From NCBI RefSeq assembly GCF_006345805.1, contig NC_042997.1, positions 98,828,001-98,892,000 of the forward strand: a stretch of DNA of 64,000 nucleotides. The letters are read 5' to 3'. Origin of the DNA: Octopus sinensis (taxonomy: Eukaryota). The position numbers and the translations under genes were made by a program. Under the pieces are notes generated by a model. It was given only the letters and a program-made list of their open reading frames with translations. It made no database searches and had not been told where the DNA came from. This document shows, in pieces, positions 12,880 to 63,872 of this stretch (the stretch's first letter is position 1; each line of letters opens with the position of its first letter).

Positions 12880-13023
12880 CTATGAATCACACGACAATCT
12901 CCAAGCGTTCAACCTGCGAAGCTTGATTAGAGTACTGAAGCCTTTTGTAATGTGTTTACACACCATTTGCTTGACGCGCTTCCCACGTGATCGGTTACGA
13001 ACATACTCCACATGAAATACAGC
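12880..13023 (-). CDS. GH114 endo-alpha-1,4-polygalactosaminidase-like gene, coding exon 4 (last)
   Basis: Acceptor ttttttctctttttcag then AVFHVEYVRNRSRGKRVKQMVCKHITKGFSTLIKLRRLNAWRLSCDS-TAG; phase 0 matches the exon 3 donor; typical GH114 end (VF.VEY..C..GFS..K..L..C). Confidence 0.92.
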   Translation of the reverse strand, partial: AVFHVEYVRNRSRGKRVKQMVCKHITKGFSTLIKLRRLNAWRLSCDS

Positions 13024-13139
13024 CTGAAAAAGAGAAAAAACACATTTATTAATATACATACAAATACAGCTGAGAAAATACGAAAGTCATGCCAGTGAAA
13101 GAAGAAAATTCTATCAAGATACAAGAGAAAATAATACAC

Positions 13140-13760
13140 GTGTAGATGAGGTTAAGAGATTCATCTACTTGCGCAGCAACATTTTTAACAGTGGTGACAC
13201 AGAGCGATACGTAGTGAGCAAAATTGGAAAAGCAGGGTTTATCTTTAGGAGGCTCAGAAACATCTGACAATCTAATCAGATGAATCTAAGAAGCAAGATA
13301 CTTTTGTATAATTCTTTGGTCATCCCGATTGCCATCTATGCCAGCAGAACGTGAAAGATGACGTTAGGAATCGTCCAGAAGCTTGATGTATTCCACCAGA
13401 GGTTCTCCCGCAAAGCTCTTAATATCTCTTGGCACTTACAGAATAACCAATGAATAAATCTATGGGGAAACTAAACAGAAAATGCTATGCATCGAAGTGA
13501 AAGAGCGTCGCCTGAAGTTTCTTGGACATGTCTTTAGAATGCCATCCACAAAACAGCCACAACTCTCCCTCGATTCGAAGCCTGAAGTGGGGAAAGGAAA
13601 CGTGGACGACTATTGATAACATGGAATCGACTATTGATAACATGGACAGTTCTGAAGTATCTATTTGCAGAGAGAAGTTGAGCTGGGACGATGCCAAATC
13701 TCTTGCAGAAGATTGCAGAGGATGGATATCGTTTGCTGTTGTCTGATGGACTAAAATACA
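13140..13760 (+). mobile_element. Degenerate RTE-clade LINE 3' fragment
   Basis: Translation with stops: VDEVKRFIYL.S....KIGKA...FRRL....KILLYNSLVIPIAIYA..T.....KLDVFHQR..RK.LNISW. Confidence 0.75.
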
Positions 13761-15334
13761 TATGCTTTCCTACAAATACAAACATACATACATACATACA
13801 TACATACATATACAAGCTTTAAAAGAAAATAAAGCTTTGTACATCCTTGAGCTATTAAGGTGTGAAATATGCTTAGCAGGAGGATTTTTCCTTAAAGATG
13901 AAACAATAATTTCGAAGATCGTGATCAGATCTATACACAACGTTATCAGTGAAACGTCGCAGTTAAGACTCAAATAGCCACATACTAGTTAAGTGCATTG
14001 AAGTTTTTAATAATCCGTTAAGGCTTTTATCTTTAAATTAACAAAAAAGCATCCCTTGCAACAGTAGATCGAATAAACTTTACAACTAATCTAGACCGTG
14101 CCATATGTAGAGGAACAAAGATATATCAACCTCTCGGTATTTAAACTCAATGATTGATATAAGAATATTAGATTTCTCTTCGATCGAACCACTTTAAGCA
14201 AAACTTCTGATTATTACGGTCAAGTGCTAGCAAGAATTGAGTTAAATAAATTCTTTTTATTACCCCGGCGCGAGCAACAAACCACGAAATTATGATGTCA
14301 TTCAGAAGCTTCCATACATCAATCTCCATGTTTTACACCTACTGATGCGGGGGGCAGGATCGTAGGGACAGTCACCTCACACACCTCCTCCAAAGGCTGG
14401 ATCTCCAAGCATGATGAATTGCTTCGAATATCATCGAACTAATTTGTTTTTAGTCTACCCCAAGATCTTCTGCCCGTTGGTTCGGCTCTACCCCTAGAAC
14501 TTCTGCAGGTGGCTCGGCCAGGATACTAAAGACTTCTTAGTGCCAAACAGGAGGTACTTTTCACCCTGAAACAAGCACTTCACAATACAATGGACATAAC
14601 TACAGAAAATAACTTAACGAATTTATTGCTGAAACTTGTTTACCCCACCCTCCTCCGTGTTTAAATTATTATCTTCTATATAAAGTAAAGTTAATACACA
14701 AATTAAAACACGGAAAAGAAACTGTAAGAATGTGTACGTTTAGGAAATTGAAGATGTGTTGGGGCACTCACACTTAAAACACACTCATGAACACACACAC
14801 ACACACACACACATATATATAAAGTTGGCAAAAAGTCACCTGACAGTAAATTAAAACCATCCAATTCCAAGATTAAAACCAAAAACTATTTTATACGAGA
14901 CTTTGCTAATAAATAGACAAATAATGTTTAAAAAAAACCGGTGATTTTAACTCACAACATTCAAGTATTAAACATTCATAACTGGAATGAATAAATGAAA
15001 TTGAACATCACGTATTTATGGAATTTGTTATTTACCATTGGGTCAAGAGTGTATATATATATATGCTGTTTTTACTGAGATCTCCCTTTTTAGTAGAAGA
15101 AATAGCTATAACCCTTTGACTGCTATTTCTAAATTCGGTATGTGGTAAGGCAACTCGTTGCTAAACCCTTATTGCTTAGTATTACTTAAATTTTCCTCGA
15201 ATGAGGCTTTTACATGCCGAAGACTACTTGGTGTAATTGATAATTTTTCCAAATTAATTAATTTCACCCTTCATTATTACGGATATATATATATATATAT
15301 ATATATATATATACATATATATTATATATATATA

Positions 15335-17001
15335 CCGTGAGGTGGGGTAAATGTGCGCCTCATGAGGTAACTGTGCATCCATGTGAAATATTTTTTAGAA
15401 ATTGTCATAACATACAGTAGTGATGTTGGTCTTTTCTTTATAGGTACTGATGTGCTCACGATTGTTCCAGTGATTTTGATGTGAAAAAACGATACCGGTG
15501 AGCGACATTAAGAGACCTTTGGGCAGGCTTGAAAATCGAATAGCAATAAATTCTGATCTAGTGAACGTCCCGAAAATGAAAACACTAAGGGTAAGCTACC
15601 TATGATAAAATTGATCTAGAGCATTGATTTCTGGCACATCTGTGTTAAATATCCTGAGGTAGATTGACACTAATTTATATGTCTCTAGATGAAAGTATTA
15701 GTCAGTAATATTCTATTACAATAAGGTGGGGCTATTACAATAGCACTCATTTGCTGCAGCCACGTGATGTTGCGTTCTATGCACCAATGAAAGCAGCATG
15801 GAGGAAGTTTCATACTGAGTGGAAGATGGTTGATGGAAAATTCTACACAACCTTGCCAAAGATTCATTTCCCAAAGCTGCTATTCGCCCTCCTGGGCAAA
15901 AATGGAACACAAAAAAATAATATACTGTAAATGCCTTTCGAACAACATGCTTCTATTCACTTAACAGACAGAAAATTCTTAGCAAGAATTCAAAGCCAGA
16001 ATCGTCATCACATCTCGTAAGTCTGATTATTATTGAACATCTAATGCAACTTCAAGGAGCCTCGACAAAAAACCTGCGGCGGCTCGGTGAGGAAAGATGA
16101 TGCACGTTTCACCAGGAAAAAGCATCTCCATGGATGATGTTACACCAGGTCCATCTGACTTCCAATCTCAGAGAAAGCGAAGCCCAAAAAGGAAGCTACC
16201 TATCGACCTAGATGACAATTCCTCTGAAGGACCAGATGACCCTGCCTTTATTCCAAGCTCGGAAGATGAAGCAGAATCTGAAGCTACCATCCCAGGAAAA
16301 TTCAGAGCGAACCACTGGCACTAGTGACATATATATTGGGAAGCTAGAAAAGGGATGCTATGTGATTGTAAGATTTTTAGGGAAGAAGGCACCACACTAT
16401 TATGTTGATAAACTTTTACATGAGGATGTAGAGGACTCATGGATGATTCAGTACTATAGGTGCTGCTTTGAGGAGTCTGGTTCTTATCTTTCCTTTAAAG
16501 AGTCACAAAATCCTAATCTCTTAATTACAGACAAAGAAGCAATTGTTACAATCCTTGCAAAACCTTTAGTTGTGAAACACATGTATTTCAACAAGGATGC
16601 TTTGATGAAATTGTAATGCTTGAAAATTGTTTTTATAAAGTAGGTATTTTCATTGTTATACTTACCACTGCGTCAATTACTATGCCCAGTAGTAGTTAAA
16701 TGCTTTTTAAGAGAATTGCTTATGTTATGTATCATTTGCACACTTAGTCTTTTATAATTTATTGTATTTAAGGTAGAAAATAAAGGTAATGTGCGATTGT
16801 CCCACAGCGTGGAAAAAACCTGCACCCATACGTTTTTCATCATATCTATTTGTGCAATTTGTTTAGAAATGTGGCTTTATGCGCAAAAGGCTGCATTAAT
16901 AAAGTGCTTCAAAAAATGTCTCATTCTTTTCATTCGCCCCCTGGAACGAGGTTTTATTACAAAGAATAGCATAAAAGGTACATATTTACTCCACTTCACA
17001 A
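15335..17001 (+). mobile_element. Internally deleted pogo/Tigger-like DNA transposon
   Basis: Imperfect TIRs ccgtgaggtggggtaaatgtg / catatttactccacttcacaa flanked by TA; remnant STHLLQP.DVAFYAPMKAAWRK...TLPK..FP.LL matches the end of the pogo DDE domain. Confidence 0.8.
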
Positions 17002-62580: not shown

Positions 62581-62783
62581 AGAAAGGTATATGAAAAGTT
62601 CCTGGTTTTGAGTAAAAGAAAATACAGGAGGACCAGTTAATTATGATATTATTCAACATATTGCTCTTGTCAGATTCACACACTTATGACAGCGTTCCTT
62701 CAGTTTTATTAAGCCATGGAAAAGAACACCAACAAGGCCTTTCGCTCCACCTTTAAAGCTAGGAACGTTTCAGCAGCCCTTTG
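62581..62783 (-). mobile_element. mariner-derived MITE, reverse copy
   Basis: Reverse complement similar to 60334-60550. Confidence 0.7.
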
Positions 62784-63072
62784 TAAACGCCCCACTTTCC
62801 AGCTAAAGTAAAAGAACTCATTACACAACAAAAAACATTTTGTATTGTCAAGCATAAAATATACGTAGGCATACATCAGCTACAAAAGTTTATTTTTAAT
62901 GGAAGCTGAACTGGTTTCATACATTTATTGCAACGCAATGATTTTGTTAACTCGATTTATGAGACATTAGATCAGAAGACAGTTAAAGCGTGACAATCGT
63001 AGATGGTTTACCGTCGTTCCTCGACGAGGATTGAGCTGTTCGTCAATTGAATAATTTACTCCTGAGTTAGTA

Positions 63073-63291
63073 TCCAAAAGGTTGATGAAAAGTTCCTGGC
63101 TTTAAGGGTATCGCGAAAAGCCTGGCTGTAGGTCCAAACTTCCGAGTTTTCTTACAGAGCTTAGAAAAACTAAAAGACCGCTGCCAAAAGTGTGTGTATC
63201 TGAGAGGGGAATACGTTGAATAAAACCATAATTAACTGATACTCCTGTATTTTCTTTTACCCAAACCGAGGAACTTTTCAGCACTCCCATG
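63073..63291 (+). mobile_element. mariner-derived MITE
   Basis: Aligns to 60334-60550. Confidence 0.8.
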
Positions 63292-63666
63292 TATAAGTGG
63301 CTAAGCATTCCACAGACATAAGCGCTCATAACCTAATTATCAGTCAGGATGAGTGTGATACAGTGTATGTGACAAGGCCATACTATTTTAACTACATGTA
63401 CAAAGCCAGCCAATAGGTTCTATATAGTTTCTATCAACATAATTCCACACACGAGGTAATTCCACACAAGATCGACTTGACGCTATAAAAATTGACATTT
63501 GCCCAAGATGTCAAATTGTAGAATCGAGGCCGAGCTCTCATGCTTGCGAAATGAACTTCTTAACAATTCAGCCATACTGCCTAAAATAACAGGAAATAAA
63601 TATCTATAAACAGTAGTAACGAAAGAGAAAGTGGAATGATGGGATAAATAAATGCTCGTTACTTAC

Positions 63667-63872
63667 TTTTTGAGGTAGTCGAACTGCGGTTTGTACGTGT
63701 CGTATAGATCTACATCATACATCTCTACTTCATGAGTAAGATCAAGCGGACTAGTCAACTGCCATTGCCAAGTCATTCCCGGTTCAAATTGCCACCAACA
63801 TCCAAGAACTGATGCAATCTGCTGCAAGATGACCAGGTGCAGTACAGTCCATATCCATCCTGCATATACCAT
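63667..63872 (-). CDS. GH114 gene, coding exon 1 (signal peptide plus N-terminus)
   Basis: ATG at 63872 just inside acceptor ttgtttcttcagcag; MVYAGWIWTVLHLVILQQIASVLG then WWQFEPGMTWQWQL..MYDVDLYD; donor gtaagt after AAA AA, completed to AAG by exon 2. Confidence 0.95.

Follow-up and report, generated by a model that had tools for sequence, protein, structure and literature searches.

A known relative of the octopus protein is Aspergillus fumigatus Ega3 (structures 6OJ1 and 6OJB), a fungal glycoside hydrolase described as membrane-bound, which is encoded in a GAG biosynthetic cluster and remodels the fungus's own polymer; Asp189 is its nucleophile, Glu247 its acid/base and Trp154 the tip of its lid (PMC12054363, PMC10485009). 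Bacterial GH114 endo-alpha-1,4-polygalactosaminidases (the Pseudomonas sp. 881 enzyme and homologues in Enhygromyxa, Nannocystaceae, Polyangia, Vibrio sinensis and Endozoicomonadaceae) match the octopus protein in domain limits, cysteines and C-terminal motif but differ by long low-complexity or lipoprotein-like N-terminal linkers and by intronless genes of often very high GC, which stand alone in varied contexts, the V. sinensis copy adjoining a T6SS IcmF gene. The PelA hydrolase domain (GH166), Sph3 (GH135) and GH191 alpha-galactosaminidases are built on a related barrel whose corresponding site also holds an Asp/Glu pair, and they act on cationic GalN/GalNAc exopolysaccharides, but belong to different CAZy families, with 11-18% identity to the octopus protein and a TM of ~0.7. 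Among microbial hydrolases domesticated by molluscs and other invertebrates are GH45 and GH9 cellulases and GH13_1 amylases. Such animal-domesticated enzymes follow the same pattern of gained introns, signal peptide and digestive expression in other families and on other substrates (PMC7003070), and a survey of molluscan glycoside hydrolases leaves GH114 unmentioned (PMC7560691). The direct orthologue in O. bimaculoides, XP_014784751.1 ("PGS", LOC106879613), has the same four coding exons and the same mini-exon isoforms upstream and belongs to the 12 bacteria-to-octopus HGT genes of Liu et al. 2018 (Gene, doi 10.1016/j.gene.2018.05.013; data PMC6011040); PMC6011040 does not deal with a comparison of introns, catalytic residues, structure, selection or a survey of the phylum. 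The horizontal transfer that a sequence-only reading had offered as a candidate is supported but already published as an ancient event of bacterial origin, and what is new here is the pan-mollusc distribution, the shared introns, the dN/dS values and the closer bacterial than eukaryotic affinity.

The window, i.e., the whole stretch of DNA analysed, covers 64,000 nucleotides of the O. sinensis genome. A tblastn search with the 264-aa protein recovered four minus-strand pieces in it (E 3e-27 to 2e-64), and an exhaustive exon-boundary search led to a single solution of 206+296+149+144 nt encoding 264 aa, with a GTAAGT donor at all three introns, a pyrimidine tract followed by CAG at all three acceptors and phases 2/1/0 in order. 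The gene structure first read from the letters is borne out to the base:

63873..63884, minus strand: 5' extension of exon 1 in longer isoforms, with a tandem NAGNAG acceptor
63667..63872, minus strand: exon 1 of the 264-aa isoform (CDS nt 1-206), ATG at 63872-63870, donor GTAAGT from 63666; hydrophobic N-terminus (residues 5-24), C25, TWQWQL strand
54065..63666, minus strand: intron 1, 9602 nt, phase 2, splits codon K69
53769..54064, minus strand: exon 2, 296 nt; C76, N95, W105, C134, predicted nucleophile D140 (codon 53853-53851)
48466..53768, minus strand: intron 2, 5303 nt, phase 1, splits codon E168
48317..48465, minus strand: exon 3, 149 nt; GLKND, predicted acid/base E198 (codon 48376-48374), C200, C206
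13024..48316, minus strand: intron 3, 35293 nt, phase 0, between K217 and A218
18119..26335, no strand assigned: retroelement fragments with reverse transcriptase in intron 3, outside the gene's product; ORFs at 18119-19516 (-), 20915-22534 (+) and 25484-26335 (-)
12880..13023, minus strand: exon 4, 144 nt including TAG at 12882-12880; VFHVEY, N227, C239, STLIK, C262
11858..12879, minus strand: probable 3' UTR, a conserved block with AATAAA/ATTAAA signals at 12664, 12448, 12315, 12180 and 11971

The joined protein, absent from the program-made list of open reading frames, is already an NCBI/ENA gene model, its exact sequence being annotated as CAI9715575.1 and XP_029640837.1 (Octopus vulgaris/sinensis) on 213-226 Mb chromosomes of both species. 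Longer annotated isoforms of 271/272 aa acquire the N-terminus MSPVL(R)FK-M... through a 14-nt coding mini-exon, which is joined at the NAGNAG acceptor (63880-63884) either after AG 63884-63883 (X1, MSPVLRFKM) or after AG 63881-63880 (X2, MSPVLFKM). Since O. bimaculoides carries the mini-exon 7.8 kb upstream, its counterpart here must be past coordinate 64000, so that the window does not hold the complete gene: the coding exons of the 264-aa isoform lie inside it, while the longer isoforms begin outside.

Four octopod assemblies contain this locus, and the O. bimaculoides and Argonauta orthologues are built from the same 206/296/149/144 exons. Protein identity to O. bimaculoides reaches 98%; the CDS is 97.2% identical and the block 11858-13812, which includes exon 4, 93.7%, against 83-88% for the introns. 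Intron 3 is swollen by retroelement fragments and microsatellites; its O. bimaculoides counterpart measures 20 kb and that of Argonauta 19 kb. From the window, only the exons, the 3' block (11948-12522, at 68%) and one non-colinear retroelement fragment (18153-19525) align to Argonauta. With dN/dS at 0.117 (dS 0.096) against O. bimaculoides and 0.03-0.04 against Argonauta, far from the value near 1 expected of a functionless gene, the coding sequence evolves under purifying selection.

As the earlier reading had proposed, the 264-aa protein belongs to GH114; it matches the full length of the profile PF03537 (E=8.7e-82, 274 bits, profile positions 1-231 of 231). It also matches the Ega3 structure 6OJ1 (E=1.5e-59; identity ~40-45% over 235-248 residues), D140 and E198 aligning to residues 148 and 206 of its chain. 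An offset of 41, verified through Trp154, identifies these two as Asp189 and Glu247; Trp154 itself aligns to W105 at the loop tip. The catalytic pair proposed from residue spacing agrees with the alignment. Over 168 homologues, D140, E198, C76, Y77, S79, G81, E84, R87, G177, L178 and K179 are conserved at 1.00, and W105 is invariant or conserved at 0.99. The six cysteines are invariant too, the motifs quoted for the family are indeed the conserved ones, and both the cysteine positions and the three sequons (N95, N173, N227) are as claimed. The AlphaFold2 model (pLDDT 95, pTM 0.88) finds Ega3 as its best PDB match (TM 0.84/0.88, rmsd 1.9 A); next come FsGH114, GH191 and PelA. Family, (beta/alpha)8 fold, Asp/Glu pair, lid Trp and most cysteines are common to both proteins, which supports the assignment as an Ega3-like GH114 with intact catalytic residues. 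Unlike Ega3, the octopus gene is a stand-alone gene of an animal genome, nearer to bacterial enzymes, and its product ends in a bacterial-type WRLxC whose C262 has no counterpart in the aligned Ega3 chain.

By homology to Ega3, we predict a retaining endo-alpha-1,4-galactosaminidase in which Asp140 would serve as nucleophile and Glu198 as acid/base, with Trp105 on the lid loop of the barrel; its likely substrates would be de-N-acetylated alpha-1,4-GalN/GalNAc stretches of the kind that bacterial Pel and fungal galactosaminogalactan contain. An exported and conserved enzyme could also have as its main substrate something other than microbial polygalactosamine, either an endogenous molluscan glycan or one reached through altered specificity. 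In some members of GH114 and its neighbors, such as TmGH191 and FsGH114, activity differs or was not detected (PMC12054363), and two Crassostrea virginica GH114 genes adjoin a GH56 hyaluronidase-like gene. The invariance of the catalytic pair, lid Trp and cysteines and the fold nearest to Ega3 argue against such a shift, which we regard as unlikely. To our knowledge, no endogenous alpha-1,4-GalN polymer occurs in molluscs.

Profile, sequence and representative searches gave, among the matches listed, named animals that are all molluscs: cephalopods (three species of Octopus, Argonauta), gastropods (Patella, Lottia, Gigantopelta, Littorina, Pomacea, Batillaria), bivalves (Crassostrea, two species of Mytilus, Pinctada, Mizuhopecten, Dreissena) and the chiton Liolophura with two paralogues; no other animal phylum was seen among the best 120 or best 150 matches listed. 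Among these matches the animal distribution is neither patchy nor specific to octopus but pan-molluscan, with conserved introns. In every species compared (three octopods, Patella, Lottia, Gigantopelta and Liolophura) the introns fall at alignment columns 69 (phase 2), 168 (phase 1) and 218 (phase 0), and the exons of 296, 149 and 144 nt are identical in length across octopods, patellogastropods and chiton. Such identity of column and phase across octopods, gastropods and chiton implies that the gene is older than crown Mollusca.

Bacterial and archaeal contigs, scanned at one genome per species, contain at least 587 candidate stretches encoding relatives, the top ones from Myxococcota. Molluscs and bacteria share a mean identity of ~54% (up to 63%, in bivalves; 50-55% for octopus), versus 33-45% between molluscs and eukaryotic GH114s (Ega3, chytrids, the ichthyosporean Abeoforma, Diplonema, Hondaea, Plasmodiophora), the holozoan Abeoforma standing at 36-38%. 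A neighbor-joining tree with eukaryotic outgroups places molluscs as a single clade among 149 bacterial sequences, the nesting having only moderate bootstrap support, in line with the transfer of a microbial-type enzyme. A bacterial origin is the simplest explanation, and probably the octopus gene is the orthologue of a conserved mollusc GH114 gene derived from one bacterial transfer in the mollusc stem lineage and inherited vertically since. We infer a donor whose closest living relatives may be Myxococcota, assorted marine Proteobacteria and Chloroflexota; the three spliceosomal introns would have been gained before chitons, gastropods and cephalopods split, and purifying selection would have acted ever since.

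Vertical descent would instead place GH114 in the opisthokont or eukaryote ancestor, molluscs alone among animals having kept it after many losses, and would ascribe the bacterial likeness to slow evolution or to eukaryote-to-bacterium transfers. The family does occur in the eukaryotes named above and in a foraminifer transcriptome, and is reported in brown algae and chlorophytes (PMC11468063); the support for nesting in bacteria is moderate. Nevertheless, the low mollusc identity to sampled eukaryotic domains, the restriction to molluscs among the animal matches listed, the dozens of independent losses required and the bacterial nesting in the maximum-likelihood trees of Liu et al. 2018 (PMC6011040) make this scenario improbable. 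Two or more bacterial transfers, one to cephalopods and another to the remaining molluscs, might be suggested by the distance trees, in which cephalopods (100% bootstrap) and non-cephalopod molluscs (72-74%) are joined at only 12-16%, and by the octopus sequence, whose identity to other molluscs (44-51%) does not exceed that to bacteria. Across the distance trees mollusc monophyly has only 12-28% bootstrap, the placement of cephalopods is not robust and their long branch is pulled to other eukaryotes in 41 of 200 replicates. The point neighbor-joining tree nonetheless unites molluscs, and independent gain of three identical intron sites, from octopods to chiton, is so unlikely that we give repeated transfer very little credence. 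Bacterial contamination, an assembly artefact or a pseudogene, for which the bacterial-type sequence alone speaks, is ruled out by three GT-AG introns of 5-35 kb full of octopus-type repeats, the recurrence of the locus across octopods, a GC3 of 41% where the closest Myxococcota genes have 86-97%, an intact ORF under selection and a sequenced spliced cDNA.

That cDNA, a 489-bp RT-PCR product of O. bimaculoides PGS from hepatopancreas, shows that the gene is transcribed and spliced (PMC6011040). Its gapless alignment covers nt 66-554 of the spliced CDS and includes 206|207 and 502|503, two of the three junctions predicted earlier. Among sequencing-run assemblies, no complete transcript encoding exactly this protein is on record for Octopus; a 924-nt intronless contig (run SRR30931882) holds the full CDS of a relative, P0003, 66% identical, whose grouping with octopods at 100% bootstrap points to another cephalopod. 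As for export, the hydrophobic stretch of the short isoform (Kyte-Doolittle 1.72 over 19 residues, basic n-region absent) fits the secretion previously assumed but could be a signal anchor, not a cleaved signal, and the protein would be either secreted or anchored through this segment. Since hepatopancreas cDNA is the sole expression datum, the balance leans towards digestion, and it is tempting to hypothesize that octopuses use this enzyme to digest microbial exopolysaccharide in the digestive gland, a role that would be slightly more probable than defence of mucosae against biofilms.

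The gene on the minus strand stands as a coding unit, and its structure carries much of what follows. A tblastn search of the window with the protein proposed from sequence alone recovered all four pieces (E 3e-27 to 2e-64), and an exhaustive boundary search returned the proposed exon limits as its unique solution (206 + 296 + 149 + 144 nt, TAG included):

Coding exons of the GH114 gene, with limits from the boundary search
63667-63872, minus strand, exon 1, 206 nt
53769-54064, minus strand, exon 2, 296 nt
48317-48465, minus strand, exon 3, 149 nt
12880-13023, minus strand, exon 4, 144 nt including the TAG stop codon

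All three introns are canonical GT-AG introns, with GTAAGT at the start and a pyrimidine tract plus CAG at the end; the phases 2/1/0 and the 264-residue translation were both reproduced, and the sequons (N95, N173 and N227) and cysteines lie where they had been placed. The description as a four-exon gene holds for the coding core and fails for the whole gene, which has an extra 5' mini-exon outside the window. Nor is the joined protein, which the ORF track had not shown, new to databases: the exact 264 residues are publicly annotated on chromosomes of 213-226 Mb, in O. sinensis as XP_029640837.1 (LOC115215683 isoform X3) and in O. vulgaris as CAI9715575.1, which places the window in O. vulgaris/sinensis. 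The window protein has 98% identity to that of O. bimaculoides LOC106879613, and an orthologue also occurs in Argonauta hians.

Longer annotated isoforms start with MSPVLRFKM or MSPVLFKM. The extra N-terminal residues stem, in O. bimaculoides, from a 14-nt coding mini-exon (ATGTCACCTGTTCT, followed by gtgagt) 7.8 kb upstream; since only 128 nt of the window lie upstream of the ATG, the mini-exon must be beyond the window end. A tandem NAGNAG acceptor on the minus strand at 63880-63884 (ttcttcAG, cAG, then ATTTAAAATG; AG at 63884-63883 and 63881-63880) accounts for isoforms of 272 and 271 aa that are one Arg apart. The O. vulgaris isoform CAI9715574.1 (P0127 in our protein set; 227 aa) begins at M33 and has its last 26 residues replaced via a GT inside exon 4, so that C239 and C262 are lost; such a product would be without the last barrel elements, and its alternative terminal exon was looked for in the window and not found. 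At the other end, the 3' UTR of the window gene probably extends to about 11858. The block 11858-13812, exon 4 included, has 93.7% identity to O. bimaculoides, where introns reach 83-88%. The stretch 11948-12522, about 0.4-0.9 kb past the stop codon, aligns to Argonauta (68% over 588 nt) despite saturated synonymous sites and is possibly a regulatory element or part of a conserved 3' UTR.

Contamination and pseudogene readings are rejected on the host-type introns and flanks and on dN/dS values of 0.03-0.12. The gene is carried by chromosome-scale records of O. vulgaris, O. sinensis, O. bimaculoides and Argonauta, and the exon structure 206/296/149/144 is the same in O. bimaculoides and Argonauta. 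At the distance of Argonauta, with synonymous sites saturated, colinear alignment to the window is confined to the four exons and a single 3' block; the non-colinear matches comprise one retroelement fragment and three short stretches (76-150 nt). Function, as the sequence-only reading had expected, is supported by a dN/dS of 0.117 against O. bimaculoides (dS 0.096) and of 0.03-0.04 against Argonauta (Nei-Gojobori). The CDS is 97.2% identical to that of O. bimaculoides and the introns 83-88%; its GC3 of 41% is host-like, and the nearest Myxococcota genes have 86-97%. P0003 is a 66%-identical relative that joins the octopods at 100% bootstrap; its full CDS lies, without introns, on a 924-nt contig of sequencing run SRR30931882.

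Expression evidence comes from the orthologue XP_014784751.1 (isoform X1 of LOC106879613), of which Liu et al. sequenced a 489-bp RT-PCR product obtained on hepatopancreas cDNA (PMC6011040). This cDNA aligns gap-free at CDS nt 66-554 and crosses 206/207 and 502/503, which bears out two of the three proposed junctions; it is 98.8% identical to O. bimaculoides and 96.1% to the window. The gene is under purifying selection, and the published RT-PCR shows its orthologue to be transcribed and correctly spliced at junctions 1 and 2. The octopuses used as RT-PCR source were bought in Shenzhen, and the product is nearer to the Californian O. bimaculoides than to the window (PMC6011040 Table 3). The few codon-changing differences between this product and the window CDS, e.g., at D143, may be sequencing errors.

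The introns have taken up retroelements and microsatellites. Intron 3 (13024-48316) is longer here, at 35.3 kb, than in O. bimaculoides (20.1 kb) or Argonauta (19.1 kb), and contains numerous long microsatellites together with the following fragments:

Reverse-transcriptase ORF fragments in intron 3
18119-19516, minus strand
20915-22534, plus strand
25484-26335, minus strand

The retroelement at 18153-19525 is also found in the Argonauta locus, at a non-colinear position. At 39654-40610 a 319-bp unit occurs in three tandem copies (89% matches) with long (AT)n tracts on both sides. Purine-rich arrays of GAA/GAG, whose higher-order period is 82-85 bp, occupy 32999-33556 and 41309-42075 together with runs of (AGT)n and (TTC)n. 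These arrays and runs give rise to long spurious ORFs and local GC-skew spikes. We rejected as genes both the 295-aa ORF at 41259-42146, which has only low-complexity Pfam noise (Nop14, CDC45 and others), and the ORFs within 1-12800, which are microsatellite translations.

The assignment to GH114, made earlier from motifs, is confirmed by the PF03537 profile, all 231 positions of which are covered (E=8.7e-82; 274.3 bits, the cut-off being 27). The nearest relative with a solved structure is Aspergillus fumigatus Ega3 (6OJ1/6OJB, E about 1.5e-59), with Fusarium FsGH114 next. A Foldseek search with an AlphaFold2 model made from 68 homologues (mean pLDDT 95, pTM 0.88) also ranked Ega3 top (6oj1_A, TM 0.84/0.88, rmsd 1.9 A) and FsGH114 second (9ep6_A), with GH191 enzymes and PelA after them; the window protein is predicted to be a (beta/alpha)8 barrel closest to solved GH114 structures. 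Asp189 of Ega3 is the nucleophile and Glu247 the acid/base, both experimentally verified (PMC12054363; roles also in PMC10485009), and a mobile lid loop has Trp154 at its tip (PMC12054363). W105 of the octopus protein aligns to this Trp154, through which the offset from chain to protein numbering was set at +41, and D140 and E198, previously named as the catalytic pair, align to chain residues 148 and 206, i.e., Asp189 and Glu247. The motifs on which the family had been recognized are conserved: D140, E198, C76, Y77, S79, G81, E84, R87 and G177-K179 are invariant in a 168-sequence alignment, where W105 has a conservation of 0.99, and six cysteines (C76, C134, C200, C206, C239 and C262) do not vary across 68 sequences, bacterial and molluscan alike. 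From this homology we infer an endo-alpha-1,4-polygalactosaminidase activity and the corresponding substrate for the octopus protein; an assay of any animal GH114 was not found in the literature searched. The hydrophobic N-terminus that had been pointed out spans residues 5-24, the sole strongly hydrophobic segment of the protein, and fits export, either as a cleaved signal or as a signal anchor. A possible cleavage site (between SVLG and C) is seen in the octopus protein, and the GH114 proteins of other molluscs have short, classic signal-like N-termini.

The search for homologues (one single-sequence search, two profile searches and one across 1.84 billion representatives) disposes of the view of an octopus-specific gene, since every named animal match among the best 120-150 matches listed is a mollusc:

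Molluscs with GH114
Cephalopods: Octopus (three species), Argonauta
Gastropods: Patella, Lottia, Gigantopelta, Littorina, Pomacea, Batillaria
Bivalves: Crassostrea, Mytilus edulis, M. coruscus, Pinctada, Mizuhopecten, Dreissena
Chiton: Liolophura, two paralogues

Judged by those best 120-150 matches, GH114 is likely absent from non-mollusc animals, but a divergent copy there could be missed, since the scores of divergent molluscs overlap with those of bacteria. The introns lie at the same alignment columns and phases (69/2, 168/1 and 218/0) in three octopods, Patella, Lottia, Gigantopelta and the chiton. The split between chitons and conchiferans is Cambrian or older; gene and introns are therefore older than crown Mollusca, and the gene is ancient and pan-molluscan. 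Separate transfers to cephalopods and to other molluscs are rejected, given three introns at identical columns and phases. In the vent snail Gigantopelta aegis (locus L003, 10001-17928) a fourth, lineage-specific intron at column 114, phase 2, splits the 296-nt exon into 135 + 161, and the GC3 of this CDS (65%) is far above that of other molluscs. In Crassostrea virginica (locus L087, 1936-15777) there are two divergent GH114 genes, at 4851-9033 on the minus strand and 10001-15777 on the plus strand, and a Glyco_hydro_56 (hyaluronidase-like) gene directly adjoins the pair.

As to the source, a scan of bacteria and archaea with one genome per species turned up at least 587 candidate stretches that code for relatives. 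Closest among these prokaryotes are Myxococcota (Enhygromyxa, Nannocystaceae, Polyangia, Kofleriaceae), then Chloroflexota and marine Gammaproteobacteria, and no specific donor bacterium can be named. GH114 domains also occur in Plasmodiophora, Diplonema, Hondaea, chytrids and the ichthyosporean Abeoforma; bacteria have a mean identity of 54% to molluscs and other eukaryotes 33-45%. Trees were built here by distance methods (NJ) only. Without eukaryotic outgroups, bootstraps are 100% for cephalopods, 72-74% for non-cephalopod molluscs and 12-16% for all molluscs; with them, the point tree brings all molluscs together, nested within a set of 149 bacterial sequences, the position of cephalopods being unstable. 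At least 50 bacteria join the molluscs before any other eukaryote in 149 of 200 bootstraps, and Liu et al. reported ML support for nesting of the gene in the donor group (PMC6011040).

Nearest kin among protists and chytrids had to be considered, as their multi-domain proteins came top in the representative search, but per domain they are more distant than bacteria. These proteins (P0175-P0186) carry 2-5 GH114 domains in tandem arrays: 5 in Plasmodiophora brassicae, 3 in Diplonema, 2-3 in Hondaea and 2 in Abeoforma. The 409-aa top match P0130, at first sight a possible eukaryote, is prokaryote-like, since its 7-kb metagenome contig has compact intronless genes. There is no sign of a viral vector, a scan of viral contigs having given three weak relatives only (38-44% identity).

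The sequence-only reading is right in its core, and horizontal transfer is already published for the sister species: given the data of Liu et al. and the cDNA alignment, the transfer, expression and two of three junctions were in the literature. The discovery value is small in that respect, the gene model being publicly annotated and the orthologue's transfer having been called in 2018 with expression evidence. In the literature searched we found no mention of the gene IDs, nor of phylum-wide conservation with fixed introns, nor of the proposed biochemical role.

The question then arises as to what molluscs do with such an enzyme. The bacterial homologues stand alone as genes of secreted type, and their surroundings vary, so that gene context is no guide to role. 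The sole expression datum, hepatopancreas (digestive gland) cDNA, favours digestion of microbial or detrital exopolysaccharide, and we lean toward this role; mucosal anti-biofilm defence would be equally compatible with the sequence. It is tempting to propose, at somewhat less than an even chance, that a bacterial GH114 was captured before the Cambrian mollusc radiation and kept for more than 500 million years in every major class as the sole animal endo-alpha-1,4-galactosaminidase, dissolving cationic Pel-/GAG-type microbial matrices from the digestive gland or mucosal surfaces, for feeding or biofilm control. The gene is a clean and well-dated example of how a bacterial carbohydrate-active enzyme became fixed in the stem lineage of an animal phylum; its three introns have stayed in place since before the split of chitons, snails and octopuses. 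Should the enzyme prove active on Pel or GAG, animals would have a natural enzyme of their own against biofilms or for digesting microbes, and a marker useful for dating when introns are gained after horizontal transfer.
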